A stretch of 64,000 bases of DNA from Convolutriloba macropyga (taxonomy: Eukaryota). The notes beneath the pieces are model-generated. The model worked only from the letters and a program-made list of their open reading frames with translations. It was not told the DNA's origin and searched no databases. Every line of letters begins with the position of its first letter. The first letter of the stretch is position 1. The translations under genes and the position numbers were made by a program. Where the stretch lies: NCBI RefSeq assembly GCF_964194025.1, contig NC_134475.1:24676001-24740000 (forward strand). Reading direction: 5' to 3'. Below, piece by piece: positions 27,749 to 49,304 of the stretch.

Positions 27749-28179
27749 TTAGAATTCTTCAACTCGTAACCGCAAGTTGTATTTGCAAACCTGCATTTTT
27801 ACATCTTCGAGCAAGGCGTTGGAGGCACAGACACAAACAAGTGCCCGATTGCCAAATTTCTCGTACTCTTCTAGCGTTTTGCCGACATTCATGCGACCTC
27901 TCTTGACCTTCAGAAAGTTGTCAGAGGTCAAGTTATCGCATTCCGTTCTAAACCATCTGCCCATTTTATTTTCAGTGACATTTATAGTCTGCTCAAGTGG
28001 CTGCTTGCCTGTGTAATGTATAATATGGCGACACTTTCGGTAATTTTTGAGTTTCGAAATCAGTTTTAAGTACAACTTGATCATGCAAGCCTCTCTTGCA
28101 GAGTACATCAAGGTCACTCGGGTAAGCTTGGAGTCCTGGTTTTGCTTGTTATCCAGACCTGATCTTGCCTCGTGATCGT
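27749..28179 (-). CDS. Ferric reductase-like gene exon 3 (NADPH-binding C-terminal part)
   Basis: Part of ORF 27749-28267; VTLMYSAR, GRMN, VCVCAS and terminal EEF match the FRD/NOX NAD-binding tail. Confidence 0.8.
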
Positions 28180-31100
28180 CTAAAACAGAACAGTCTTTCA
28201 GGTCCCCTTTTTTTACCTTTAAGAAACCCAAAGTGAGCCTCCAAAATGGTACGAGGTTCTCAAGCACAATAGCTCCAGAATCTGTGGTAAATCAATTCGA
28301 GACAAAGTTGCCCCGTAGTTAATATAAAACATTAACTCTATATGTGGTTCAAAAGTTAGGTAAAACGCCTGTAAATAGATCATCCTTCCAGCGAAATGTT
28401 GCAAACAGGAGCGCGGGTAAAAGCAAATAAATCTGGAAGTTTCTCAAATTTGAATTTAACCCATAGTCAATTATACATTGGTGAATTCAACCTCTTCGGA
28501 CTGTTCCTGTATTGCATATTTCTTGCTGTATAAGAAGAGAATTAGAGGTTTGTGGTTTGGGGCATAACAATAAACTAAAATTAAAAATCAAAGCAGGGAT
28601 CTCTTCTCCATTTGTGCCCCCGTGCGTTACGCACCGCGTCACTAAATTATATATCCCGTGGCATTAAATCAACATGAACAAAATATTGTATACGCTTTTT
28701 GGGGGGGGGGGGCTGTGTCATTATAATGAATCCATTAAGTTGCGGGAGGCAAACGGAAAAGATCCGAAGTGAGAAGGAGAGACAAGAACGAGACCGAGCA
28801 AAACCGCCTCAAACAAAGATGTAAAAAGATTAGGACTAAAATTTGAATACCGGCCAAATGAAAAAAAAAGATTGAAGATAATGTTTTGATAAGAAAAGGA
28901 ACGTGATGTAAAATCAGACGAAAAATTTCAATGCGGATGTAAAATGTGAATCCCCTTTGACGGCAAGTAAAATACAAATAGAAAATCTTTTACTAGAAAA
29001 ATAGAATTTTGGGTTTAGCTTAGGTGTCGGAAATGGGAAAAGATTTAGAGTTCGGCGAACGCAAAGGAAGCCGAAGTAAAAGTAAGCCGGCAGAAAAGAA
29101 GCCAAAAGTTATGTAATCTATCAGAAATAATACATTGTTAGCCGTTACAATCAATACTGCGCGTGGTATTATAGTGCATAATGTATTCCAATGTACCAAA
29201 CAAAAAAAAATACGTCAATTTTTAGACATCTTGTGGGTACGGGCCTCAGCGGACCGCTGTCCATGGACATTCCTCTCATCCGCTGTGGGATGTAAGGTTA
29301 TCCAGGCGAAGCCGCAACGCGCGCGAAGCGCACCCACCGGCCCGCCAGGTGAAACTTAAAATACCAGTATCCCAAAATTGTTCGGCTTCCTTGACCTCAT
29401 TTTCAAAATTCGGCTTGCTTGCCTATCGGCTTGCTTGACCACCAGCGTAGAGTTTAGCTTAAAACTTAACCACAGCAATCAGCCCCGATTGCTCTTGAAG
29501 ATTCAACATTGAAAACTTGAAGAAACTTGCAGATTCTGCCCCAAATTATCCTATAAAACGCAAAATTTATTAGTGAAACAACGTTAAAGTACAGAAATGT
29601 ATTAAGGACTACTCTCCAAAAAATTTTATTGGCAAAAAAAACTAACATGGGATGGAGGAAAAGAATTATGATACTAAAAAGCTGCCTATAGCAAAATTTG
29701 TGCACCTATGTGTCACTTATGCTCAGAAGGCTCAATTTGCGCTAAAGCAATATTAAAGACGTAAAACTATGTATTTTTAAACGAATTTTCATTTCGTATT
29801 CTCCGCTTACACAGAAACATATTAAAGCTGCCTCAATTTTGTACTGTGTGCCACGTTGCAATTCTAGAAGTTTGATTCCCATGGACCAATTTTAAAATCA
29901 GCTCAGCTTAAAAACAAGATCTAGTAGACAACATGTATACTAACGATAAGCAGCATGCACCAAAAATTGTCAGGCTCGAAGCGTTTCCAGCGAAAGAATT
30001 TTGCAAACTCCACTAAAAATGCACAGATTCATTAGATACTCATATAGTATGCTCAAATTCTTCCGTAAATTTGAAAATTACACAAAAAAGTCTACATTTG
30101 AAAACTTTTTGTTTAACATAGCAAAACTCTGTGCATAAATCATAGACTGTCGTCAATTTTATAGTGCAAATATCAAAGGTAGTCATCAAATTCTTCATGA
30201 AAAGGAGAGGAGGTCTGGAAATGGTCAGCAGAAAAGTCCACATCTGAATCTAATTTAAAATATTCTCCATTAGTATGGTGATTTTCGAAGCATATTTTAC
30301 AAAGACTTAAATTTCAATGGAAAAATTTGTTCAGAATAGAATTGGAAATTTGACTTTGATTTTGCTGAGAACTTGCCCAATAACTGAACACAAAGTTTTG
30401 TTCGGTTTGATGTCTGTCAAGTTAAATACAAATTTTCATGTTTACGTTGTTCTATGTGCAATAATGTACGTCAGATCAGGAGGGCAACCAAACAAACATT
30501 TAACAGTTTTATAAATAGACTCCTATCTCATTACCAAACTGCCTTCAATATATTTTTCCCAACGCTCCTCAAATTGCGTTTCAGCTGTTATGTACAATTA
30601 GGGGATCATTGGTTTTTTAAACAAAAAGGAAAAAACGGCGTGCAAAAATCAATTCAATCAAATTTCCTCAAAAGTAAAAGATTAAAACGAAAGCTTGACA
30701 GCGGACAAAACAGCAATGTACCTAGAAGATGCAAAAGAAAGTTGACAATTTCAAACGAATTTTTTTCAGCTGCTAATGTCACAATTGGTAAAATTTGTAA
30801 TTTATGAGTAATTTTTTTGTCGTGTTCTCCGCTTCAACAGAAATATAGAAATATAGGTAAGCTGCCTTAATATTTTAATGTTTGCCAAGTTGCATTTCTA
30901 AAAGCTCAAAACTCAGGGACCAATTTCAAAAGCAGTTCCACCTAAAAACAAGATCTAATAGACATCAGACATACAAAGTGTAAGCAGCATGCGCTGAAAA
31001 AATTCCAGCTCGGAGCTTTTGCGGCACAAGAATTCTGCAAACTCTTCTAAAAACTTCACAGAGTCATTAAATTTTCAAAAAGTATGATAAAGGTCCTTGC

Positions 31101-34100
31101 TTTATTTCGAAAAATTACAAGAGAAACTGTACATTTAAAAACTTATTGATTAACATTGCAAAACTTTGTTCATCAAAATAAGATTGTAATCAATTTCTCA
31201 GTGCATTCATTTAAGGTTGTCATTAATTTGTTCACGAGAAGGAGAGGTATCTTCAAATGTTCAGAAACTAGTCCACATCTGAATCAAATTGAATTAAGGT
31301 TCAATTAGAATGGTCTTTTTTTAAGCATAAACTATCAAGACTGACGTTTCATTGGAAAAATTTGGTCAAAATAGAATTGGAAATTAGACTCACATTTCTT
31401 TGGGAAGTTGTCCAAAAACTGAAATCAAACTGGTGTTTTTTGATGTTTGTGGAGATAATTAAAAGTTTTTGTGTTTACGTTGCTTCTATTTGCCATAATG
31501 TACGTCAGAGAGTGTACGCTCTTCAAATAGTGTTTCAGCTGTGTTGTACGGTTAGGGGGATTATTGGGTTTTTAAATAAAAAAGAAAAATTGGGCGTAGA
31601 AAATTAACTAAACCAAACCTCCTAGAAAAAGAATATTAAACTATTAATTTGACTGCAGACAAATTATTATAATGTACACCGAAGACGCTTCTTAAGGTTA
31701 ACAATCTCGAATGAGATGAAGGTTTCTCCGCTGTTAACTTCATATTTCGTAAAAACTTTGCAGTTTAAACGTGTTGTCAGTGTCCCATTCTCCGCGTACA
31801 CAGAAACAAAGTTAAGAGCTAAGCTATATTACTTTTTTTACTGTTTGCCACATTGCATTTCCAGAGGTTCAGTTCCCATTACCAATATTAAAAATTTTGG
31901 TGGGGCGTTTTGCGCCGCCCAAGTCATATATGCAACCAACATGTACGAATATTGCACACGCTCTTTTGGGGGGCGGCTGTGTCATTAAAAAGAACAAATC
32001 AAGCTGCAGGAGGAAATGGAGAAGACCCAAAGTGAGCAGCAAAGACATGAGCGAATCCAAACAAAACCGCCTCAAACAAAGATGTAAAAGGATTTTGACC
32101 AAAATTTGAATGCCGACGAAATGACAAAAAAAAAGAGTGAAGATAATATTCTGTTAAGAAAGTAAACGTGATGTAAAATCAGACAAATAGTTTCAATGCG
32201 GGTGTAAAATGTGAATCCTCTGACGGCAAATAAACCACAGATAGAAAATCGTCTACTAGAATAAAATAATTTTGGGTCTTGCTCAAATGTTGGAAAGGGG
32301 AAAAGATGTAGAGTTCAGCTTAAAATTTAACCATAGCAATCAGCCCCGATTGCTCTTGAATATTCAACAGTGAAAACTTGAAGAAAATTGCCGATTCTAC
32401 AACAAAAGTATCCTATAAAAAAGAAAATTTGTTAGTGAAATGTCCTTAAAGTATAGAATTGAATTAGGGACTATTTTCCTAAAAACTGTTATTGGCAAAG
32501 ATTAACATGGGATGGAGGAAAAGAACTATAATACTAAAAAACTACTTATAGCAAAATTTGTGCTCTTATGCGTTACTTATGCTCGGAGGACTCAATTTGC
32601 CCTAAAGCGATATTAAAAGCATAAAAATTATGTAATTTCAAACGAGTTATCATAGTTGTACTCTCCGCTTAAACAGAAACATATTTAAGCTGCCTTAACT
32701 TTTTTCTGTTTGCCACGTTGCATTTCTAGAAGTTTGATTCTCATGGACCGTTTTTTAAAGCATTTCAGCTTAAAAACAAGATCTAGTAGACAACAAGCAT
32801 ACAAACGATAAGCAGCATGCACCAAAAAGTGTCAGGTTCAAAGCTTTTCCAGCAAAAGAAATTTGCAAACTTCTCGAAAAAATTCACGGATGCCTCAAAG
32901 TTTCACAAAGTATCATAAACTTTCTTGCTTAATCTTGAAAACAGCCAGAGAAACTGTATAACTGTATTTTACAAAACTTTTTAATTAGCATTGCAAAACC
33001 TGATCATCAATCATAGGTTGTTGACAAATTCTCATGCATATATCTTAGCTTGTCATCAATTTCTTAACCAGAAGGACAGACAGGTATGTGTTCAAATGTT
33101 CAGCAAAAAGTCCACGTCTGAATCAATTTCAAAATCTTTTCTATCATATTTTTCATTTTTGAAGCATTAAATATGAAGACGACATTTCTTTGAACAATTT
33201 GATCAAAATAGAATAGTAAATATTATAAATAAGATCCTATCTCATTATCAAACTCCCTGCAAAGTATTGTTCCAAACGCTCCTCAAATCGTGTATCAGCC
33301 GGGATGTTTAAATAGCTGTTCATCGTTTTTTAAATAAAAAGGAAAGAAGAAGGAAAGAAAGATTAGCTGAATCAAACTTCTCAAAAAATATTAAAACGTT
33401 AAATTGGCTGCGAAAAAAATAATATAGTGTACCCAGAAGATGCAAATGAAGATTGAAAATTTCAAATGGAGGAAGGATTGTTTCTCAGCTGCTAACTTCA
33501 AAATTGGTAAAACTTTGTAGTTTAAAGGTGCTTTCCTGGTCGTATTCTCCGCTTTCACAGAAACATAGTTAAACTCTTTTTTGCCACGTTGCATTTCTAG
33601 AAGTTCAATTCTCAAGGACCACTTTTAATAACAGTTCAGCCTAAAAACACAATCTAGTAGACAGCAGGCATAAAAAAATAAGCAGCATGTGCCAAAAAGT
33701 GTCCAGCTCAAAACCTTTCCTTCGCAAGAATTCGACAAACTCCTCTACAAAATACACGGACTCATTAGACGTTCAAAAAGTATAAAGAAGGTTCTTGCTT
33801 AACATGTAAAATTGTAAGAGAAACTGTTTATTAAAAAAACTTATTGTTTAACATTGCAAAACCTGCCCTTCAATCATAGATTGTTGTCAATTTCTCATGT
33901 ATATATCAGAAGTTGTCATCAATTTCTTCACAAGAAGGTGAGGTACATCTTTAAATGTTCAGCAAATAGTACACATGTGAATCAAATTGGAAATAGTTCC
34001 AATTAGAATGGTCATTTTGAAGCATAGAATACGAAAACTGACTTTCTTTGGAAAAAATTTGGTCAGAATAGAATCTGCAATTGAACTCAGATGTTCTTGG

Positions 34101-37100
34101 GAGCTTTTCCAAAAACTGAAATCAGAATGTGGTTCTATTTGATGTTTGTGGAAATAATTAAAAATTTTTCTAGTTAAGTTACTTTTGCCATAATGTACAT
34201 CAGATAGTGTACGCTCCTCAAATAGTGTTTCAGCTGGGCTGTACGTTTAGTGGGATAGTTCAGTTTTGGAATAAAAAAGAAAACTAGGGCGTGAGAAATA
34301 ACTGAATCAAACTTCCTACAAAAAGATTCAATTGTCAATTTGACTGCGGACAAAGTATTATAAGGTACATAGAAGACGCATATTAGGGTGGACAATCTCA
34401 ATTGAAATGAGAAAGAGGTTTCTCCGCTGTTATCTTCACAATTCGTAAAACTTTGTAGTTCAAACGTTTTCTCAATGTCGTATTCTCCGCTTGCATAGAA
34501 ACATAATTCAGCTGCCTATTTTTTTACTGTTTGCCACGATGCATTTGTAGAGGTTCAGTTCCCATGACCGATCAGCTCACCTTTAAAAAGAAATCTAGTA
34601 GACAGCATGAATAAACGATAAGCAGCATCCACCAAAAAAGTGTCACGTTCAATGCTTTTCCAGCTGAAGAACTTTGCAAGCTCCTCAAAAATTGACACGT
34701 TTTCATTAGATGTTCAAATTTTATGTCAAATGTTCTAACATAATTTTGAAACTTACAAAAGAAACTCCACTTTCGTAAATTTATTGTTTAACATAACAAC
34801 CATCTGTGCATAAATTTTCTTTGGCTTCAGTTTTTCAGTGCGTAAATCAAAAGTTATCAGCAATTTCTTCACGAAAAGAGGGAGTTCTTGAAATGGTCAG
34901 CAAATATTCCACATCTGAACGCATTTAAAAATAATTGTTTTTAAAATTATCAATTTTGAAGCATAGATTAGGAAGGCTGACCTTTCTTCGGAAAAATATG
35001 GTCAAAATAGAATTGGAAATTTGACTCAGATATCCCTAAGATCTTGTCTCAGAACTGAACTCGAAATGTTGTTCTACTTGATGTTTGTGGAGTTAATTAA
35101 AGAATATTCATGTTTACGTCGGTTCTATGTGCCATAATGTGTGTCAGATAAGGAGGGCAACGAAACAAACAGGAGAAAATTTTTTAAATAGACTCCTATC
35201 TCATTGCCAACCTCGCTTCAGTTTCTTGTTCCAAACGCTCTTCAAATTGGGTCCCAAACTGAGTGCACGATTAAAGGGGTCATCTTTTTTTCAAAAACAG
35301 TGGAAGGGGTGTAAAAATTAACAATCAAACTTCTTTACAAAGCTTTAATTTGACTGCGGACAAAATAATATAATATACCTAGAAGATGCATAATGAGGGG
35401 GGAAGTTTTAAGGGGTTTGGGTTTGTCATACATCATAAATTAATTCAGTGCAGTAAATTTATCATACGATGTACTTAATTTATTTAGTGTACTAATTCCT
35501 GAGGGGCATGTGTATAAGTCATTGTTATTTCACATGCTAGTCTGTTGTTCCCATCTCCCATAGCGGGAAATTATTGTTCACGTTTGTTATGACTTCTGGA
35601 ATACCAGTTGCCTTAATCTTCATTCTCTTAGTTTTGCACTTCGCGTACAGTTGCTCAATTTAACTTATTCTTCATTAACTGTCTTTACAAATCGAGTAAA
35701 GTAAACGAATAATCCTTACGCGATTCGCTAAGCGGATTCATTTAGAAATTGTGTAAAGCGCTCTCGCCGCGCAAGTAGGACATAGAACATAAACGAAACT
35801 CGCCACTCAAGAACAAGTACGCAATCTCACTTGCGTACGACATGGCGCAGTCAGCAGCTCAGAAGCGAACCCCACTTGGCATTGAGCCATTTTGGGATAA
35901 ACCTAGTGTAGACCCGCCGCTGAAATGGGAAAAGTGGCAGATGCAGGCCAAGTTAGCTCTTCTTGCGAAGGAAAATATTACAATAGACACTTTGTTGGAA
36001 CCAAAACCCGAAACATTGCAACTACCATTTGAACCGATCTATGAGGTTACGATAACAGGATCATCGGCACAATCGGAGAGGGAAAGACTGGCGAGGAACG
36101 CTCAAACAAAAATGAACTGGGAAAATCGGTGTCAGAGACAACTGGAGATAGGAAAAATGTGCGGAGACAAACCATGCGCACAGGCCGATCGAAAGACTGT
36201 GTCAATGCTATACCTCAGTTTGGGCACTGGAGGACGTCGAATTGTTTGTAGCCAAAACCCACACCTCAAGATGGACAGTCTCTCAACAGCAGAATCATGG
36301 AAACAGCATTTATTCGTCAGCGCAATATAACATTTGATAGATATGTACTTCTCACCACAAAACAGACAAGAGGAGAGTCCATCGAACATTTCTTCGGAAA
36401 ATTGAAAGAACTTTCTGAAAATTGTGAGCTCGGAAGTCAAGAAGACACCCTCATCAGAGATTTACTTATTGCAAATATGTTAGATCCAGAAATTCAACGG
36501 GAATTGTTGCGAGAAACTTTAGAACCAGCCCAAGCATTACGTTTGGCCATAAATATGGAATTAGGTCAAAGAAACCAACTACAAATTACAAACTCGCAAT
36601 CTGCTCCGCAAGTTAATGCAATAATTCCTCAACGATCTTTTTGACCACCGAATCAACGGCCGACTACATCTAGCTTTCCTCGATCACCAAACCAACTCTG
36701 CAGGAACTGTGGCTTAACTTGGTCAGCTAATCATAAAGTCAAGTATATTGCGAGAGGCAAGACTTGCAATAATTGTGTCCCCCAAAACCATTTTTCGCGA
36801 GTGTGCAGGAAACCGAAGTCATCATCAAATAAATCTACCCGCTCTAATGTTAACTCCGTTGAAGAAACTACAACTGACCAAACAGTAAACGCTATACAAA
36901 ATATGAATTATAACCCGCAATGCAAATCGGACTACGATAGCTCAGATGACAATATGGTCGCTAGCATCGCAAGTAACGCAATACAGATCGAACCAAAGAA
37001 CACCATCTTACAAATTGGTAATACCCACGTTGAACTTCTCATTTATTCAGGCAGTGTATGAAGTATTTTGCCCAAGTCTCTCGCTTCGGAAATTGTGGAA

Positions 37101-40100
37101 AATTTTCCCCTTGCTCGTTGACTGATGACAGCGCCTCCCCAGGAACTCAAAAAATTTTCAAACGAACCCATAAACGTGACGGGTATGATACAGGCACCAA
37201 TTGCGAGCAATGGATGGCGACTTGAAGAAGCTGAATTTGTAGTAGTCCGTGATGGGCTAAAACCACTAGTGGGTAGAGATCTATTTGACGCTCTCGGAAT
37301 CTCAGTAACTCAAATCCCAAAACATGAAGGTAGTATGGTCAACACTATCACATCTCAATGTCCATTTAAAACACGTATCGCACAACAATTTCCTCAACTT
37401 ATTACACGTATTGGTCGCTCAAAAATACATATTGTCAAATCTAAATTCCATCGAAATTTTCAGCCAAAACATCAAAAGGGTAGAAGAGTAACCATTAATT
37501 TACAAGAACGAGTAAATAATGAAATTAAAAAACTTCTTGTAGAGGGACATATAGAAAAACTGAATAACTGTTCTGACCAATATTTTATTTCACCTATTGT
37601 AATCACAGTCAAACGAGATCAAACCATAAAGTTAGCACTAGATTCTAAAACTCTTAACAAAGCAATACAAAAAGAACAAATATCAGATGCCAAATATTGA
37701 AACACTTATGGATTCGATATCACAAATAATAACAAACTACAATACAGAACCAGCGGAACAAATATATTTCTCTACTATAGATCTTAAATATGCATACAGC
37801 CAACTAAACTTACACCCTGAAACTGCTAATCATTGTAATTTTAATATTATAAGTGGTGACATGACAGGCACATATCGATTCAAGACGGGATTTTACGGTC
37901 TTACAGACATGCCTGCCGAATTTCAGAAGGCAATGGATTACACCCTGATTGGACTTAAAAATACATTTTGTTTCTTAGACGACATCTTAATTGTTAGCAA
38001 AGGTTCAGAAGATGATCACTTCCAACTTGTATTAGATTGTCTTAAAAAATTGGATGCAGATAACCTTCGAATTAACCTTCCGAAATGCCACTTCGCGAAA
38101 TAACAAATTTCCTGGTTAGGATATAATATAACTCAATCTGGGATATCGCCACTCGAATCAAAAACATCCTCTATTATGTCATTACAACCACCTAATACAC
38201 TTAAAAAATTACGCTCATTTCTCGGCTCAGTCCACTATATTAGTAAATTTATTCCCAATTTAGCTCAACTTTGCCATCCTTTAAGACCTCTACTTCGTAA
38301 GTCCACTAAATACATTTGGACTGACACTCATACACTACAAATTAATGCCATTAAAACTCGCATAGCAAATCATACAGAAAACATTCACTATAACCCCCAA
38401 CTTGAAACACGAATCAAATGTGATGCTTCTCGGTCCGGATTGGGAGCAGCACTAGAACAACTAACAGTTGATGGTTGGAAGCCGATCTCTTTTGCATCAA
38501 GATTTTTAAACAGTAGTGAAGAACGTTATAGTATTAACGAATTAGAACTTCTTGGGGTAGTATGGTCCATAGAATATTTTAAAAATTATTTGTATGGTAA
38601 AGAATTCACTGTTATCACTGATCACCGCGCATTACTTTCCATTTTAAAAGAACATCGATCAAATAAAAGTTACAACAGTAGGTTATCACGATGGTTTGAT
38701 CGTCTTTTGCCTTATCAATTCTCAATAGAGCATCTACCTGGCGCGAAAATGGGACTAGTTGATTACATATCTCGAAATCCATATCAACCAGCAAAGTGTT
38801 TCCAAATATGACGAGGAATTTTTAGTTGCGACGTTATCGAGCATACATTCTGATGCTCAATTACTTCAACGAAAACACAATCTCTCAGCTAATTCACTTC
38901 AAAAATTATATATTGATATTGATGGTGAAAATAAAAATTCCACCACCAATACAGAACAAGTTTTAACCATAAATTACGTAACACCAAATCCTCAAACTGA
39001 AATTCATGATTTACTCGCCCCGCGAAACCATAGTTCAAAATTCTGTTCAAAACAAACTTCCAATTTAGACATAAATTCCGCCCAGCGTGTACGTTTAACA
39101 AATGAAAGTTCGAATCTCGCGGCGCGAAAATACAACTCTAATGTAACCTCCCTTAAATTCAATCATCCGTATAGTACACACGCCCCGCACGTACATTTAA
39201 CTAAAAATACTAAATCATTCGCTGATCAAAAACATAACTAATTTCTCCATTCCACTAATAGTATTAATTGTACTAGTGCACATGATCAGCGAGTACATTC
39301 AATTCAAAATGATTGCGTATTCGCGCATACATATCCTACTTCAAAAGTTTACACTTCTAATTCAAATAATACCACCTCCGATCTCGCATCGCGAGTACGC
39401 TTTTCCTTTAACAATTTAACACCCGCCCGGCATAATACTTTATTATTTACTCATAAGACTAGAATGCATTCCTCAGATGACTCTTTTGCAAAGCAAGTTA
39501 CTAATTACCCAATTCACTCTAAATTTGCGTCACATAGTCTACCATTTACAACTAATCCTGTACAAATTGAGTCTCAAATGCTAGTAAACACAAGAAAAGC
39601 GTCACTCGCTTAACAAAATACTTCCAAATTTACTCCATTAAGTCATTCTCACTTGTCAATCAAAAATCAGCCTCAAATTCCTACCTTTTTTAGTAAGCCA
39701 CACTCAAATACTTTAAATAACTCACGTGCTCAATTAACAAACAACAAACAAGTGCTTTTTGCCCAAACTCAACCTGAAATTCAGTTGTGTTCCTCTTTGT
39801 CAATTAACTTAATTGAAAAAATTCAACTCTCATCAACAATGAGTCAACAAGTTTCATCTCTCAAGGGAAAATCAATCTCCTCCCGAACAACCAGAGCTTC
39901 GCCTCGCGTGTCATTCACAGACAATGCAACCACAAGTACGCCACGCAGATCCTCCTCGCATTCAAATTTAAGCACCCCACTAACGGATAGTCTCCAAGTA
40001 AGGTCTTTTGAGAAAGTGGTGGGAAAAGTATTTAGCAAAGGTCTAATTGCATCACTCACAAGCAAGGACGCAGTTCTGAAAGAGGTTCGGGACTGTATAA

Positions 40101-43100
40101 TTCGGGGAGATGAAGAAAGACTAAAGGCCCTCAACCCGTATCTTCATAGCTATTGGCGGGACCTTCATGTGACTGGCGGGTGTGCTTGTATGGACGAGAA
40201 GGTGGCCATTCCGAATGCACTCAAAGATGCCCTCATTGACGATTTACATGCGAGTCACCCAGGAAGCTGGGGGATGGTATGTATGGCTCAGCACTGCTGC
40301 TGGCCATAAATGAATCGTGATTTGCTTGTCTAAGCAATAGAGTGCAAATCTTGCACTGTTATCGGTAAAAATTTAAAATCTGTCATTCCCGCAAAACAAT
40401 TTAAATCAACTACACCATGTATAGTTCCAAACCAAGAAATACAAATAGATTTTGCAGGGCCCATTAATAACGAAAAAGAACATGAAATATACATTTTAAC
40501 ATGCATTGATAGATTTTCAAAATACCCTTCTGCACAATTGGTTGATAATGCAAATTCCCCCAATGTCATAAAATTCTTAGATAATTATATACAAATTCAT
40601 GGAGTTCTTTGTTCCTTAAGAATAGACCAAGCTCGTTGTCTTATAGGTAACCAAAAAAAAAATTTTTGTACAAAAAATAATATCAGACTAATACCAGCTC
40701 CGGCAAACTATCATCGTGCAATAGGTTTAGTTGAACGACTTATTGGTACTATTAAACAACGCTTGGCATGTATGAAAGACGCAAATAAAGAAGTAAATTC
40801 GTTCACCATTAAAGCAGCATTAAAATCAATTATATACCAGCTTCGCATATGTAAACATAGAACAACTAAGGTTTCGCCATTCGAATCTCACTTTGGGCGT
40901 AAAGCCAATACACCACTTAGTAATATAAGTACTCAACCAAAATCATCTGACTTAAGTTATGAAAAAATTCTGAATCATTATTTAGATGAAGAAACTGTAA
41001 CCCCTAATGAATTGCTGCCGGAGGAACACTGGGGAAACAGCCGGAGTGACGACGAAATTGAACGCAACATGTGTAAGGCGACAAAGGATGCCACCACTCG
41101 CGAACGGCTAGCAACTGATAATGAATCCCGTTTCCTTCGCACCACGCAAGCGCATCGTCCACCTCCATTGAAAGAACACGCCGTACAGTTAAACATTGCC
41201 CGAAAGAAACATCTTCATAAAAGATCCAAGAAGAATCTGGACGGTTTGTATGAGGTGTTGGCCTCAGGATCGGTAGTACAAAAGACCGATCAATACACTT
41301 CGGTCATTCGCGAGCCGGGAAAGATGGAAGTGACAGTGCGCAATAGTGATATTGCAAAATTTGGTACTCGGGAAGAACAAAAAACCAAATTAACCGAATA
41401 CATAAACCGTCGAGGACCCCGCACGCACGAGAAAACAACTGAGGCTAAGATACTTAGCCACATCAAAGAGTGTACCCGCATACAAAAAGGAGACCGAAAA
41501 ATGAAGCATCGAAAACGAGAAACTGGTAGCGGTGTATCCTCAAACAAATCCAACATTGCTCGCGCAATGCGAGTACGCTTGCCTAAAGTTCCGGACAATT
41601 TCGCTCCCCAAGTAATACCCGAAATTCCAGAGGCTGCTCCCGAACAGCAAATTATAAATGGAGAAGTATTAATTGCACCCCCTCCTACAAATGCTCAACA
41701 AGAAGCACTCTTATCATCTCCTTCAGTTCCAACAACAACATTACCCCATACTCTGACAAGAACAACAAAACGGACTAGAAAAAGTCCTAAATATTATGGA
41801 TATGATAAAGAAGATTCATCTGGTGACTCCACTAATTCGTGTCCTCCGAACTTTGCTCCACCTCGTAGGAAGCGACGCGTCGGCGACATCGAATCGATAC
41901 AACCTTCGGTTGTACAAACAATTGTTGATACAGCTACGCGGGTTGAACCTATCGCAAACGACTTTCCCTCGCCTATCATAGGACAGGTGTCACCGACGGA
42001 CCCCCGTATACAGCACTTCAAATGAGCTAATCATTGATGAAGAAGACATGTGAAAACTCTGATTAATTAAAACTTGATACATTATTAATTATGACTAGCT
42101 ATGATAACCAGTAAATATATTGTTGATACTATTTAACCAGTGAATAAGTATTATTATTATTCATATTGTTATTAAAATTTTACTTTATGTAATTTTAATT
42201 TTCTTTGAAGCGGGAGAAATGTCATACATCATAAAACAATTCAGTGCAGTAAATTTATCATACGATGTACTTCATTTATTTAGTGTACTTATTCCTGAGG
42301 GGCATGTGTATAAGTCATTGTTACTTCACATGCTAGTCTGTTGTTCCCATCTCCCATATCGGGAAATTATTGTTCACGTTTGTTATGACTTCTGGAATAC
42401 CAGTTGCCTTAATCTTCATTCTCTTAGTTTTGCACTTCGCGTACAGTTGCTCAATTTAACTTATTCTTCATTAACTGTCTTTACAAATCGAGTAAAGTAA
42501 ACGAATAATCCTTACGCGATTCGCTAAGCGGATTCATTTAGAAATTGTGTAAAGCGCACTCGCCGCGCAAGTAGGACATAGAACATAAACGCAACTCGCA
42601 ACTCAAGAACAAGTACGCAATCTCACTTGCGTACGATAGGGTTTACCCTCACCGGTTACCATCAAATTTTTTTCTTGCAATGTAGTTGTTTTTATAAGTA
42701 ATGTTCTTAAGATGAACTCGAAGTCATCACTTGGCAAAAACTGATGGAATAAACAAATCTGAGTAACCTAACACCGGTATAAAAATCATTACTGACTGGT
42801 ATAGAGAGCATATTGAAAAACTATAATAGAAATTTAACGAGGAATTGGCATAAAACATCTTTAAAAATAAGTCCAGGAACGTCTTGAAAGTCAGATTAAT
42901 TCGAATGACGGGTGGAACGGTGGAACACAGTTATTTTAGATGAAAAAGGAGTATTTAGAAATCTGATAGTTTTTCTATTTATCTTATCCAAAAAATTAAG
43001 CAAAATTAACATGAGGATGTGCAGAAACTTAATGAAATTAAATAAAAACAGAAATTCAACAATTTTTTATGGAAAATAACTCGCGTTCAAAGGAAGCACT

Positions 43101-46100
43101 TATGTACGAGAACTACCTAATTTCACGTTTAAATTTTTTTTTTCAGAACTTTGATCGAAAACATAGGAAATTAAAGCTTTTTTCCCAACAATTTTCAAAA
43201 TTACTTGCCAATTTTTAATCTTCCTTAAAAAACCAAGATATTGAGCAAACTTAATTAATACAAATTAGTTTTAACGTTGATTTGTTGTCATTGCTCAGAT
43301 TTTATTTTTTTCAAGCTTTACGTTTTGTGGATATAATTTTCAAAAAATTCCAATGAACATTAGACAAATTATAGGAAATGGAGCTAGAAAAATCGACAAC
43401 GCCTTAAAAAACGTCCACACGGCCAAAAAGTCACAAAAATGTAAGTAGCGGCGACCAGAAATTACTTTTCTCCACAAAGCATCAGCAAGTTTCAAAACTG
43501 GATGCTGTGAAAATGGTCAGCTGTGGTGTAAAGATGTAGTAAATTTATTTGGCTCTTTTTCTTAAATGTTTCGCATTTTAAATTCCTTAAGAAATCAATT
43601 CCTTTAAAAACTTGTTTCTAAAAGTTTCTACCAGAAATGCCTACTAAAAATTAATCCTTTTAATTCAATCCTTGCAAAATTTATAGACAAATTCATTTCA
43701 TGTTCTCACTGATTAGGTTAACTGTCACATCTTAGGTTAGCTAGGATTGATGCTATTTAGTTGAAACGATTGCGGCAACTTACGTACACTTTGAGATTCA
43801 AAAAATGTGATTGTAATGGAGTAATTATCGCCGCTTCCACTGTATCTGGTCGTTTCTCCCGTTTTTTCTCCAAGAAATTTATGCATTATAGTTAGACAAG
43901 CACTGGCTGCGTGCGTAAATTTTCCTCAACGCAATGGGAGAACAGATTCGCTCTTAGGCAGAAAAGGTTTTCATCTGGAAGCTTATTCTGCGTCAGAGCT
44001 TTTTTTCAAAGCATACGGAAGAATTTTGGATTTCTGTTCAAACTATAAAAAGCTTACTAATCAATCCAAGAGCACTCAAAAAGTACCCAAATCCAGATCC
44101 TCCTGCAATTAAAACCAGCTGATCATAACTGTCAATGTTGTTCACTATAGCGTAGAAGGAACTCCTGTACGGTCCATAAGAGCGAATGTCAAAGTCGACA
44201 AAATCCTCCACGTCATCATCATCATCAACATCTTCGTTATCGTCTTCCAAGAGGGTATCCAACACTCGGGGTTCAAAGTTGCTGTTTAGTGCCAGTTCAC
44301 CTTCTGCAGCATACGTATCGCTAAATTTCTCAATTATTCGCTCGTTTGATTTCACTTCAGATTTATTTGATACACTCAAATGGAACTCGTTTTTGGTGGT
44401 CATCAGTTTTTCTGCTTTCCTGAAATGCGGTCAGTTTTTTTAAAACTGACCACTTGGTGGTCAGTTTTAAAAAAATACTCAAAGCTACATGGATGCAGTA
44501 TATCCAACTTATTATCAAGCAAGTTCCATGGAGTGCTGGCTAATCGACCTATTACAAGGGTAATTTGTTGCCGAGAAAATTAATGTATTGAAACATTTTT
44601 TTTCATACAGATTGAAACCAAATCCAGCGTAAGTTTTTGCCAATTGGCAATCAATGCGAACAATTAATCAGGTCTTCCACTTTTAAGAACAACGCGGCTC
44701 GGTAATGTGCGATCGCACATAAGGTTCCGACCCCGCTCATCCACAATTTTGACATAATTGTCTACCAAATGAGGAGAAGGTAGAAAAACCCAAAACAAAA
44801 TTTGGCGTATGAACGAAAAGATAGCCTCTAAAACAAATAACTCAGTGGAGTAAACAATGATGCATTAGATTGATGAGTTACGCCGATATTAGGAAAGCGA
44901 GCGAAGACGAACGGCAAAATCAAAGAACAACAACAAACATGAATTACATCAAAAAATTTATGTCAGTTTTAAAAACCAAAACTTAATAACAAAATCAAAA
45001 CAACGTCAGATAAAACTGAAAATGAACAAAATAACTTGGAATTCACCAGAAAAAAAATGGTTTTTCACCAGTTCATAATAAAGCTTGGTAACAATTAGAC
45101 AAAAGAGAACAGGAACTTGAAAGTTAAATAATTCGCTGAAAACAGTTAATTTCAAAGTAATGAAAACCGTTATGAATCAACTAAAATATCCCAAAGGTTT
45201 ACAATTACCAATGCTTCTATAGAAGCGAATTAAGAACGCTTGGTATTCAATTTTTTGTGCAACTACAAAAAGAACAACAAATAGACAACAAACTAAAAAT
45301 CAATTAAAACTTGCCAGAAAACGCTTTGGAAGCCAAAAGCCATACTTTGGCCCCCAAAATATGTTTGACTGCACCTTCTGCGAACATTGATACTGTATTA
45401 TCTGGCCCCTCATTAATGAAAATAAGCAACAATTAAACAAAAAAGAAAAAATGCAAAATTATGTAAAACTTGTTTTCTTTGGAAAAAAGTTTAATTCCAA
45501 ATACATGAAAGCCATTAATTGCAAAATGAAAAAGTTGAATAGGTTCATCCATTCACCCAAAGGAACTCCTTGAGACCTGCAAATATCCAGAATATGTCTT
45601 ACGTCTACAAAAAGAACGTCAAATAGGACAAAAATCAAAATTTCATCTACTTTTTTTTGTGAAAAATCCGTGTGGAAGCCAGGAAAGTCATAACGAATTC
45701 TCTTAAAACACTAGATTTTGTAATACCAATCCCTTTTGACACCTTCCTTTGAAATTTATTATTTGACCTCTTATTAAAGAAACTTTGTAACAATTAGACC
45801 AAAAAGAAAAGGCAAGATTATGTAAAATTTGTTTTTATCGAAAAATTATTTCCAAAGACATGAAATCCATTAATTACAAAATGAAAAATTTAAATAGGTT
45901 GTTTTATTCTTCCAAAAGAAAGCCCTCGAGACCAGCAATTAACAAGAAAATGTCTTACATCTATAAAAAGAACGTCAAATATGTCAAAAATCAAAGATCA
46001 ATTTACTTTTTTGTGAACAACCAGTGTCGAAGCCAGTAAATTCATAACGAATTCTTTAAAAACATTAGAATTTGTGACACCGATCCCTTTTGACACCTTC

Positions 46101-49060
46101 ATTTCACAAAACAATGTCATCTCAAACCTTTAATTAACGAGACCAGGTAACAAACAGACAATAAAAGGACCAAAATTGCGAAGTTTAAATTTTTTTTTAT
46201 TTTGGAAAACAATTGTTTTCAAAGTCATGAAAGCCATTATCTATCTTCTAATATCAGAACGTCGGCTCATCTACTCTTCCAGGAAAAGCAAATCAAATCG
46301 GGTCATTGTACAGGAAAATAAATACGACTAAAAAGACAAAGTAAAACCGACACCTGAAGACAAAATTAAAAAATTCAATTAATTTCTTCGAGGAAGTATT
46401 GTCGAAGCGGTAAAGAACCACAATCTATATCTTTAAGGACTTAAATATTATCAATAGTACGTTATTTTAAACACGAAAAATGTGACATATGAACTGACAA
46501 TAGCGTGATAATTTGACAAAATTAGAAAACATGAAAAATGGGCAAAAACCTAAAAATTAAAAAAAGTTTGTGAAATCTAGTAGTATCAAAGCCAGAATAC
46601 CACAATTTAAGAAGTAAAACCGCAGGAGAGACTAAATTTGAATTCAGCAGAAAGAAGGAGCACTCTTTGACTGCTGACACTAAGCTACAAGTTGACCAAA
46701 GTAAGAGAAAAACGGAGGCAAAGTTCAATAAGCCATTTTTTTTTAAAAATTCAAATATTTTAAAAAACAAAACGACCTTAAACGACCACAAGCAATCAAC
46801 TAGATTAATTAATTTCAAGCTAAATAGGAAGCCAAAAGGACCTATCACTAGTGAACTTCGATTTGAAATGTTATGTTATCTAATTAATATAAAAAATTAA
46901 ATCGAATTTTTTTTTTTAATAAAAAACCGACTTATGACAATCCGAATTATTTTTGGATTGTAACGATCCAAAATTGGTACAGAACTAGTCCTGCTAGTGT
47001 TGATTTTCCGTTAAGAATATTTAATTTTTGGAATGTCATTGATATAGATATTTTGTTTGTTGAAAAATCAAAAGTAAATGCTGCATTTTTGATAATCAAC
47101 GAATAAATGCTGCGTTTTTGATAATCAACGAATAATATTAATAGCAAAAAACGGCAAATACTTAATTACAGAGCACTCTCAACGGAAGTTGAAGTAGAAT
47201 TAGCCCCCTTTTCAGTATACGAAGATTCTTTTAGTGGTGTTTGGGTGTGCACTTCCAGCAAATTTTATCAGAGTGGACTAAAGAAACTTATTTCGTGCTG
47301 TTTTTGATGAAAAAGTCTTAAAATTTGTGAAATTTTTAGCCGGAATTTGACAAAAAAAAATTCAATGAAAATGGCCGACAATGTATTTTGTCTTTAAACG
47401 TAAAATCAACAACATTTTCATGAAAAAATTCATTAAATTTAATCAAAATTGGCGAAATTTTAGTCAAAAATTCCGAAAAATGTGAATGAAATCAACGGAA
47501 TTCACCCTATTTTCTCGAAAGCTTAAACCTCGATATCTCCCTCTCAAAAACAAAATTTAAAAAAAAATCTTTTTAATTCCATATTCTACGCTGGACAAGC
47601 TTTCTAAAGATACCAGTCTCAACTCTCTACGATGAATATATCGATCGGCCAAAATTGACTGAACAAAAAAAACCCAGTTGAGTATATAGTTCCTCCCCCC
47701 TTCAAGAGGGGTCGGAACAATAAAAACGAACATCAAAATACAAACTATTCCTATATTCTTAATTCCTAAATGATACTATGTGATTTGATTCATATGGAGT
47801 GACATTTAAGTGTTGACCTTTGATTTTATTGTCATGAAATAGAAATATACATGCTTGAATGAAACACAAGTTTCAGTCAGCAAAAAAGCGATGAAGAAAA
47901 ATTTAAATTCCATCATTTCTCTGAAAACGTGAAAAATACCATCTTTACCTGTTCATCAACCACATGCTCCAAGATTGTTTATTTTTCGGGTTTGCCGTGA
48001 TGACAAATCCGATGTTCCACACGTGCCTAGTGGCCGGATCCCAATTCTGAAAAGAAGTATAGGGATGCGCCCTCTGGACAATAGGTGTACAAGGGGCTCT
48101 AATTCGATATCGGTGTAGTAGCCAGTAATTATCCCCACAACCCTGACCCTCATAGGGTAAATTCGGTAAATAACCGTAGATAACAAAACTCCCCTCCGAT
48201 ATTTTGTCAATTTTCTTGACTGTGAATTTTTGAACGCGGTAGAAAAATGTGGCCAAAATACGATCAATAATGTAAAGAAATATGAATGGTAAGTTAAAAC
48301 GCCAGCAAAGTGGGTGTGAGTTCTTCCGAACCATATCAATCATAAACGCGAATCCTGCAAACGCATGAATTCCCATTGCCAAAGAATAGCTTTTATAAAG
48401 CATCCAGTCCGCACGACTCAAAGGCATCAAAATACAGAAACAAATAATAGCCAGAACGAGGCGGAATAGTTCGTCAACTGAGAACACGACTTGACCATCT
48501 TGTATGTAGTCTTTAAAGGTCCTAACGAACGGATCCCACCATTCACGGAAGTCGGTTCCGTCAAGTAGTAAATTCAACGGAGTCCCGTCTAGAATGGTCG
48601 GCAGAATCAGTAATGCGCAATGCAGTACCACCACAACTCCGTTCAGCCAGATTCCCGCAAACTTGTGAATCGCCCAATTCGAATGCCGGACGTCCATGTC
48701 AATCCATCTCGGAGCCGCTTCCTCAAGCATGTTTGGAAAAACCCACATTACAGTGACGAAAGCAATGTTTAAAGATACAATTAGAGTGCGAGCTGTAACT
48801 ATCCAAAACCATTCTGTAATCCAGCCTCCGATTCTGTCCGGAGAATATTCTGGGTACTTGTTTCTGGACCCTCGATGCAACATTATATCACCCTCCGTAA
48901 GACTTATCCAGAGTCTATCACCCACAGCCAGAGTAAAAGACATTATGGAAACAGTCCAAAACAGTCCATAATATGAGATTCTTCGTGGAATTATTCTGGA
49001 CCATCGAAAGTAACGAAATTTAAATCTGTCAGACTCTGTATGAATCTGGCTACAACCCAT
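27749..49060 (-). CDS. Ferric reductase / NADPH oxidase superfamily flavocytochrome b, 634 aa, 3 exons: join(49060..47949, 44419..44058, 28179..27749)
   Basis: Multi-TM heme domain (WAIHKFAGIWLNGVVVVLH; MGIHAF), FAD motif HPYTS, SYGPY, NAD(P)H motif LIAGGSGFG, then VTLMYSAR, HYTG, GRMN, VCVCASNAL and C-terminal EEF. Splice sites AG|GTAAAG, TTTCAG|G, A|GTAAGC and TGTTTTAG|AC are phase-consistent (1905 nt). Confidence 0.85.
28611..35392 (+). repeat. Nested ~0.9-1.0-kb tandem array (six units, arranged as two ~3.3-kb higher-order blocks), probably the interior of a HINE-like element
   Basis: TCTCCGC...ACAGAAAC-like cores at ~29800, 30826, 31789, 32662, 33546 and 34484. 28670-29050 and 29455-29800 align with 31940-32660. 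Starts with TTTGTGCCCCC plus hairpin GTGCGT-T-ACGCAC. Confidence 0.8.
29053..29447. mobile_element. 395-bp MITE-like insertion with TAGAGTT target duplication
   Basis: Absent from the paralogous block at ~32310; TAGAGTT at 29046-29052 and 29448-29454; subterminal AAGCCGA / TCGGCTT inverted motifs. Confidence 0.75.
35424..35842 (+). repeat. 5' LTR
   Basis: TGTCATACATC...CGTACGACA; about 10 mismatches to the 3' LTR by manual count. Confidence 0.95.
35842..42025 (+). pseudogene. gag-pol: Gypsy gag-pol polyprotein, broken by stops and frameshifts
   Basis: Gag with two Cys/His knuckles (CRNC...H; CNNC...HFSRVC); protease LIYSGS (catalytic D appears replaced); RT IDLKYAYSQ, YGLTDMPAEFQ, FLDD; RNase H CDAS, ELELLGVVW, TDHRAL; integrase HHCC, IDFAGP, RIDQA, GLVER. 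Confidence 0.93.
42220..42638 (+). repeat. 3' LTR
   Basis: TGTCATACATC...CGTACGATA, preceded by a polypurine tract. Confidence 0.95.
44058..44419 (-). CDS. Ferric reductase-like gene exon 2 (acidic loop, GPY and GGSG motifs)
   Basis: Matches ORF 44038-44403 extended to the acceptor; SYGPY, LVLIAGGSGFG. Confidence 0.85.
44688..47723 (-). mobile_element. HINE family 1, copy 2; fills most of intron 1 of the ferric reductase-like gene
   Basis: Reverse-complement homolog of 10787-13795 with the same ends (ATGTGCGATCGCACAT, GTTCCGACCC ... GGGTCGGAACAA). Confidence 0.78.
47949..49060 (-). CDS. Ferric reductase-like gene exon 1 (TM heme domain and start of FAD domain)
   Basis: ATG MGCSQ at 49060 (the track start at 49120 is TTG); 1112 nt; ends WLMN-R at a GT donor. 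Confidence 0.88.
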
Positions 49061-49304
49061 GATTATGAATGATACACTTATTTGACATTGATTGAAAGTG
49101 CCTTTCGTTCCACACTTCAACTCGACTATTTCGAGACAAAGAAAATCAAATAACCGTGCCGATAAGTAATTTTATCATGCTGTTGAACTTACATCAAGAT
49201 GGTGCTTGAGAGACAACACACAGTTTGCATGATTTCAACGAAAACGAAGAACTCTGAAGTTATGTTTAGTTTGCGTAAAGAAATAATGAGCGCAGTCGAT
49301 TTTA

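Follow-up and report, generated by a model that had tools for sequence, protein, structure and literature searches.

A transcribed three-exon gene of the acoel Convolutriloba macropyga encodes a probable membrane flavocytochrome from a divergent subfamily of the ferric-reductase/NADPH-oxidase superfamily

In this study, we analysed a 64,000-nucleotide (nt) stretch of the genome of the acoel Convolutriloba macropyga (contig NC_134475.1, positions 24,676,001 to 24,740,000; hereafter the window) and describe a gene on its minus strand, between positions 27749 and 49060, whose product is probably a membrane flavocytochrome. Three pieces from the open reading frame (ORF) listing of the window, at 47945-49120, 44038-44403 and 27749-28267 on that strand, had been proposed in an initial annotation to splice in phase into a single protein of 634 amino acids (aa), a proposal borne out by the coordinates, by the GT-AG splice sites and by contigs of a public sequencing run (X3). 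Exon 1 (47949..49060; codons 1-370 plus 2 nt), delimited by the ORF, the splice donor and X3 contig coverage, encodes a short N terminus, six predicted transmembrane helices—taken from the exon's own low-confidence AlphaFold2 (AF2) model, with a predicted local distance difference test score (pLDDT) of 57—and the opening strands of the subdomain that binds FAD, HPYT (48067-48056) among them. Exon 2 (44058..44419; codons 372-491 plus the split codons) begins with a poorly conserved acidic insertion (23 D/E in 75 residues) that fills its 5′ half and continues with a conserved 3′ half that carries GPY and then GGSGFG (44103-44086). Exon 3 (27749..28179; codons 493-634 plus TAA) encodes the subdomain for NADPH binding, in which CAS stands where CGP would be expected, and ends in RLRVEEF. 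The spliced coding sequence of 1905 nt gives 634 aa and the TAA, and the split codons R371 and N492 read through correctly across the junctions. The introns number two, as first claimed, namely, intron 1 (44420..47948; 3529 nt) and intron 2 (28180..44057; 15,878 nt), both on the minus strand and both GT..AG.

Support for transcription comes from the contigs of four public sequencing runs (X1-X4), which we compared with positions 43800-49300 of the window. Run X3 is not on record as RNA and is taken as RNA-like from its behaviour: it covers only exons, skips introns exactly and is a small run. Its contigs span the exons and little of the introns. One X3 contig of 1078 nt joins 47948|44418 (cut +1), skipping 3529 nt with CT..AC on the plus strand, or GT..AG on the gene strand, and this skip matches intron 1 exactly. 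A second, of 872 nt, ends its first match at 44058 and continues into 28179-28150 for 30 letters that match the beginning of exon 3 without a difference, a string that occurs once in the window. The join from 44058 to 28179, named beforehand as the junction on which the gene model would stand or fall, is thus present in a contig to the exact letter. Neither exon junction is joined in the DNA-like runs X1, X2 and X4, and the genome contains only one 100% locus for every exon, so that a processed DNA copy is rejected as the source of the joined contigs. At the 5′ end, the first in-frame ATG (49060) is preceded, 38 codons upstream, by an in-frame TAA (49174), which lies within a 5′ untranslated region of at least 240 nt (49061..49300, minus strand) covered by X3 contig 23. 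This contig follows the genome without a break between 48872 and a point past 49300, so that no further coding exon is joined upstream, and the in-frame stop in the untranslated region of the transcript contig excludes a longer N terminus. The locus is an intact, transcribed three-exon gene. Its start codons read MGC, and MG(C) is common to only some of the paralogs; N-terminal dual acylation at this site was considered and dropped, since the start is not conserved and G-C-S-Q-I-H does not appear to fit the PROSITE N-myristoylation pattern.

Pfam, run on the three exon products, recognised one domain only, NAD_binding_6 (PF08030) in exon 3 (27788-28147; 31.6 bits against a cut-off of 22.2, E = 2.1e-7), which a genome-wide Pfam scan also found, at 31.4 bits; a 15-bit Gins51_C match in exon 2 is noise. 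Neither an EF-hand nor a peroxidase domain was detected by Pfam in the window protein, only ~30 residues precede helix 1, and, with the upstream in-frame stop, these observations uphold the earlier claim that both domains are absent. A word-indexed search with exon 1 returned only nine unannotated ORFs (54-72% identity), and an exhaustive profile search of 1.84 billion cluster representatives recovered 196 relatives at E ≤ 1e-3, 8 of them at E ≤ 1e-30; many of the 196 are full length (550-800 aa) and carry HPFT. A family profile built from a 77-row alignment and run against PDB sequences matched human NOX5 from helix 2 to the C terminus (E = 5.6e-22), the dehydrogenase domain of CsNOX5 (E = 2e-14), NOX2 (E = 7e-12) and DUOX1 (E = 4e-11). 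The profile aligns to the helices of NOX5 and to its HPYT region, and HP[FY]T is kept across the family, although PF08022 itself gives no match; two distant relatives show sub-threshold matches to PF01794 (23.6 and 18.8 bits against a cut-off of 28). We read the fold from P0011, a protein of 669 aa that is the closest relative without introns (36.6% identity with the window protein across 465 aligned residues); its AF2 model has a pLDDT of 77.7 and a predicted template-modelling score of 0.77. The top Foldseek matches of this model are NOX5, NOX2, DUOX1 and SpNOX, and in VIA-align it superposes on SpNOX with Z 21.6 and a root mean square deviation of 3.0 Å (378/399 residues) and on activated NOX2 with Z 21.2 and 3.6 Å (449 residues), in both cases over the membrane part, from helix 1 onward, and the dehydrogenase part. 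Sequence identity to the solved NOX structures is 13-17%. The transmembrane-heme, FAD and NADPH architecture first assigned to the gene holds up by way of the family profile and the fold of the relative, not from the window protein alone. P0011, a relative of the cnidarian type, has in addition a long C-terminal helix after the NADPH domain (residues 622-668), part of which is hydrophobic and might form a seventh membrane helix; the window protein is without it and ends at RVEEF, and the acidic insertion of exon 2 (~70 residues) is in turn absent from P0011.

Conservation of the heme site was counted in 125 non-redundant relatives aligned to the exon-1 profile, with residues numbered as in the window protein. 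The helix 3 pair H132 and H147 (48667-48665 and 48622-48620, minus strand; spacing x14), each kept in 124 of the 125, aligns with the helix 3 histidines of NOX5 in the profile alignment, and the two residues are presumed to be the inner- and outer-heme ligands. All 57 rows of acoels and cnidarians have the x14 spacing; of the other 65, 45 have x13. In helix 5, the family alignment gives the motif H232-x12-R245-x3-H249 (48314..48367, minus strand), in which H232 is invariant (125/125), R245 is kept in 124/125 and H249 in 119/125. R245 aligns to the second helix 5 heme-ligand histidine of human NOX5 in the hidden Markov model (HMM) alignment, and in the P0011 model, helix 5 is predicted to end at the arginine, with the conserved histidine in a four-residue turn into helix 6. 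Compared with the canonical set of four histidines, a pair in helix 3 and a pair in helix 5 at x12-13 spacing, H132, H147 and H232 are present, the fourth position is R245, and a conserved histidine, H249, follows four residues on. D242 (118/125) and R91 (121/125) are also kept, and D196, E197 (D or E) and R200 are nearly invariant across the relatives; by hand alignment, this D-[DE]-x-x-R element lies in helix 4 at about the place of the (T/S)G motif of NOX. Position 151, four residues after H147, is L, I or V in nearly all family rows, so that a counterpart of NOX2 His119 is absent. In canonical ROS-producing NOX enzymes, this non-ligand histidine and the (T/S)G motif of helix 4 are both expected (PMC3591440; PMC9421330). 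The dehydrogenase part of the window protein has HPYT, GPY, GGSGFG, a YSAR strand, GR, VCVCAS and a C-terminal RVEEF, and an ending of the form R[LI/Y]RVE[EQ][FI] is common to the paralogs and to the one ortholog read. The peculiarities listed at the outset (H-x14-H, H-x16-H with an internal arginine, HPYTS, GGSGFG, CAS and MGC) are all present in the window protein, and, the MGC start apart, the atypical motifs are, to judge from the alignments, conserved signatures of a large family rather than decay or idiosyncrasies of one gene.

The genome (1.18 Gb) holds five dispersed, intron-bearing paralogs, on C8 (the gene of the window), C12, C15, C7 and C9, and exons 2 and 3 of the C15, C7 and C9 copies were located in the same order. 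The exon 3 match of C15 falls into two pieces ~3 kb apart (20613640-804 and 20616716-886), which may reflect an extra intron. One ENA assembly is from the same species (P0005 is 100% identical to the C15 copy and P0008 98% identical to that of C9), and two others, from different species, contain orthologs at 63-78% identity; the ortholog L001 has the same three exons and also ends in RVEEF. Between the window gene and L001, dS (synonymous divergence) is saturated in exon 1 and in exon 3, with dN (nonsynonymous divergence) at 0.26 and 0.44, respectively, and the conserved half of exon 2 gives a dN/dS of ~0.21. Among the paralogs, dN/dS is 0.067 for exon 1, 0.055 for the conserved half of exon 2 and 0.20 for exon 3 between C7 and C9 and 0.052 for exon 1 between C15 and C12. 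The paralogs are under purifying selection. The C12 paralog (C12:52309005-52310045) has an intact exon 1, 87% identical to that of C15, and neither exon 2 nor exon 3 turned up in the 20 kb that follow it downstream; the paralog may be truncated or have very long introns.

We consider it probable that the gene encodes a membrane flavocytochrome from the ferric-reductase-domain (FRD)/NADPH-oxidase superfamily and belongs to a deep, apparently undescribed subfamily of acoels, cnidarians and marine protists. Counted in support of this reading are the conservation across the 125 relatives, the dN/dS values of 0.05-0.20, the profile match to NOX5 and the fold of P0011. From homology with the solved NOX enzymes, the cytosolic C-terminal domain would bind NADPH and FAD, and electrons would pass from NAD(P)H to FAD, on to heme bound by histidines of helices 3 and 5 and finally to an acceptor across the membrane; that the cofactors bind, which way the electrons move and what receives them are in this sense what we infer by analogy. 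The inner heme would be held by H132 and H232 and the outer heme by H147 and the loop histidine H249, and a cluster of R245, D242 and D196-E197-R200 may shape an acceptor site unlike that of NOX. The surface-side heme histidines have been treated as the one feature conserved through the whole FRD superfamily (PMC3591440); in the present family, the outer site appears to be rebuilt, with the canonical helix 5 histidine replaced by an invariant arginine and an invariant histidine placed one turn later. The position of NOX2 His119, which in NOX is part of the oxygen site, separates oxidases from metal reductases (PMC3591440; PMC9421330), and because this signature is missing, and on that alone, we lean toward a reductase of metal or of another extracytosolic acceptor rather than a dedicated superoxide source.

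Several observations weigh against this reading. The canonical fourth heme ligand is missing, so that binding of two hemes is not assured, and the last residue, Phe here and in one ortholog, is Ile in three paralogs. The HMM check on three Pfam domains suggested by the initial annotation found NAD_binding_6 and not the other two, Ferric_reduct (PF01794) and FAD_binding_8 (PF08022), neither of which matches the window protein at E ≤ 0.1. A profile built from exon 1 alone found nothing in the PDB at E ≤ 10, and the AF2 model of exon 1 (10 sequences) has a pLDDT too low to be used for fold claims, the good model being that of a 37%-identical relative and not of the window protein itself.

The comparison with known systems suggests a place for the family beside, rather than within, the characterized NADPH oxidases. 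The solved NOX cores (human NOX5, 8u7y/6sz5; NOX2, 8wej; DUOX1, 7d3e; SpNOX, 8qq7) join a six-helix heme domain to an FNR-like FAD/NADPH dehydrogenase domain, as is predicted for the window family, and they have in common with it the helix 3 histidine pair, the first helix 5 histidine, HP[FY]T, GP[FY], a nucleotide loop of the form G-x-G and a hydrophobic last residue; NOX2 also shares the helix 2 arginine, R91 matching NOX2 R54 by hand alignment. In contrast to NOX, the window family has arginine at the second helix 5 histidine with histidine at +4, an x14 instead of an x13 spacing in helix 3, no histidine at the His119 position and, by hand alignment, D-[DE]-x-x-R at about the (T/S)G position. 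The window protein further differs in a nucleotide loop without proline (GGSGFG), in CAS for CGP and in the ~70-residue acidic insertion of its FAD subdomain, and it lacks the EF-hands of NOX5 and DUOX and the peroxidase domain of the latter. Its proposed placement outside canonical NOX1-5/DUOX agrees with the Pfam non-matches, the absence of EF-hand and peroxidase domains, the 13-17% identity and the profile scores. FRE/FRO reductases have the domain order predicted here and, like the window family, are without the NOX-specific His119 signature, yet they keep all four canonical histidines (PMC3591440), which the window family does not. Look-alikes retrieved with a language model, a lead only, include clusters named ‘Ferric reduction oxidase 8’.

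P0011 has its named relatives, which are uncharacterised proteins, in Oculina, Montipora, Acropora, Stylophora, Desmophyllum, Hydractinia and Clytia, so that the nearest named relatives are cnidarian (Scleractinia and Hydrozoa), followed by protists; the more distant ones are transcriptome proteins of Bicosoecida and Hemiselmis, three diplonemids and one foraminifer. In scleractinian members (P0193, P0194, P0203, P0207 and P0187), the N terminus is ~200 residues longer and contains one EF-hand signal, below threshold at 17-21 bits (cut-off 30), which hints at a calcium control without counterpart in the acoel and hydrozoan forms. A maximum-likelihood (ML) tree of 53 rows and 340 columns (LG+C20+F+G4), with rows drawn from this family only, recovered an acoel clade (support 100/99), a cnidarian clade (95/100) and one subfamily (100/99) that unites acoels, cnidarians and five other sequences apart from large protist clades. 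When unconstrained, the tree places the acoels next to P0016, a short contig, and to the proteins from Bicosoecida and Hemiselmis; the branches are long and the support values 85-89. Forcing all animal rows and two rows of no assigned taxon into one clade cost 2.8 log-likelihood units in the approximately unbiased (AU) test (p 0.256), and leaving P0016 out of the animal clade raised this cost to 9.7 units (p 0.065).

Among other explanations of these data, the one closest to the heme site holds that the family is a maintained pseudo-enzyme or a single-heme variant, which lost the outer heme together with the canonical helix 5 histidine and carries no electrons across the membrane. The arginine at the canonical ligand position speaks for it, as does the fact that STEAP and YedZ, of the same superfamily, work with one heme (PMC3591440). 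However, the known single-heme families lose cytoplasm-side histidines and conserve the surface-side pair (PMC3591440), and here H147, H249 and the FAD and NADPH motifs have stayed almost unchanged throughout a family of great age and breadth; a shifted ligand fits this pattern better than a lost heme, and we give this explanation a slim chance. It is hardly credible that the gene belongs to a canonical animal NOX clade (NOX1-4, NOX5 or DUOX) and has diverged by fast evolution. Human NOX5 is indeed the best sequence match among solved structures, and the weak, sub-threshold N-terminal EF-hand signal of some coral members points the same way, but the absence of Ferric_reduct and FAD_binding_8 matches, the missing histidine at the NOX2 His119 position, the 13-17% identity and the relatives among diplonemids, a foraminifer, stramenopiles and cryptophytes all oppose it, the protist relatives making the family older than the animals.

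A divergent flavocytochrome of the superfamily, which we prefer to both of these explanations, could still have reached the acoels in more than one way. The initial annotation had suggested acquisition from an alga, and the data do not sustain this as stated: the nearest named relatives are cnidarian, there are five intron-bearing paralogs, orthologs occur in at least two related assemblies, and a single animal clade is not rejected. In its broader form, with entry into the acoel lineage from an alga or other protist followed by the gain of two introns and duplication, horizontal transfer draws on the restriction of the subfamily, among named animals, to Cnidaria and these worms, on the small number of close relatives (only 8 clusters of 1.84 billion representatives at E ≤ 1e-30), on the position of the acoels nearer P0016, Bicosoecida and Hemiselmis than the cnidarians in the free ML tree (86/89 and 85/89), on the largely protist make-up of the wider family (diplonemids, a foraminifer and numerous marine contigs) and on genes that are intron-poor or intron-less. 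Yet the supports in question fall below the starred level and stand on long branches (P0014, 2.0; P0017, 1.6), the AU test does not reject one animal clade with P0016 in it or without it, and the cnidarian clade spans Anthozoa and Hydrozoa. Both protist sequences, moreover, come from culture transcriptomes, and those of MMETSP are known to be cross-contaminated. Five dispersed paralogs with shared intron positions and orthologs at 63-78% identity with saturated dS imply that any transfer was ancient. On balance, we hold such a transfer to be unlikely. The origin of the family is old, in that it predates the acoel paralog duplications and the shared introns, and the data do not point to a recent algal origin; they fit equally an ancient transfer involving protists and an old animal gene that most lineages have lost. 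A more far-reaching version, in which the family is a new class of NOX/ferric reductase with an outer site of invariant arginine and loop histidine, an acceptor other than O2 or Fe3+ and a history of gene transfer between marine protists and early-branching animals (cnidarians and acoels), receives only a low probability from us.

The gene model of the locus is sound, and its product is a genuine and conserved variant of an enzyme kind already known, with horizontal transfer as no more than a candidate history; the locus is not evidence of a new kind of system, as both the architecture and the likely chemistry are those of the known superfamily. No description of the family was found in the literature searched, including by the locus names of the cnidarian relatives, which is not proof that it is undescribed. 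One earlier survey selected its sequences by PF01794 together with the four canonical histidines (PMC9524095), another by four ligating histidines and at least 20% identity to canonical NOX (PMC9421330), and the present family would have been filtered out by these criteria as well as by those of PMC3591440. It fails both survey filters (PF01794 and the four canonical histidines) and is nonetheless old and widespread, with at least 196 clusters. The family offers a natural test of how far the outer heme site of these enzymes can be rebuilt. For corals, hydroids and acoels it means one more family of redox enzymes, so far left out of the count, and some of these animals harbour algae as symbionts, a setting in which redox exchange is important.

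Identity of the window family with the ‘Unknown’ clade of cnidarian and green-algal sequences in PMC9421330 was considered and rejected. That clade is also unclassified, EF-hand-less and NOX-like and includes cnidarians, but it has GGIGITP, CGP and the canonical histidines. Its counterparts in this genome are two tandem canonical genes ~26 kb apart on C1 (1788000-1797999, L031; 1814000-1823999, L032), which match Ferric_reduct, FAD_binding_8 and NAD_binding_6 above the cut-offs and closely resemble, by eye, the ‘Unknown’ cnidarian NOX-like sequences in the supplement of PMC9421330. These two genes would place the ‘Unknown’ clade in an acoel too.

The length of the gene of the window lies largely in its introns, which are rich in repeats. 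Intron 1 is filled with repeats of very high copy number, which take up almost all of the interval 44536-47847, and the summed k-mer depth in the DNA-like runs reaches ~1.5-1.9 million at 47480-47663 compared to ~50 over the exons. Intron 2 contains a long terminal repeat (LTR) retrotransposon at 35424..42519 on the plus strand, antisense to the gene, identified from repeat search family D4, Pfam and its ORFs and accounting for ~7 kb of the 15.9-kb intron. Its LTRs of 300 nt are 98% identical, and its reverse transcriptase and RNase H ORFs are recognisable (Pfam RVT_1, RT_RNaseH and RT_RNaseH_2) but split over several frames. Between 28700 and 35300, the same intron holds several dispersed repeat families (110-270 nt, 63-85% identity) with recurring spacings near 1035 and 2700 nt, which suggests degraded tandem or nested repeats.

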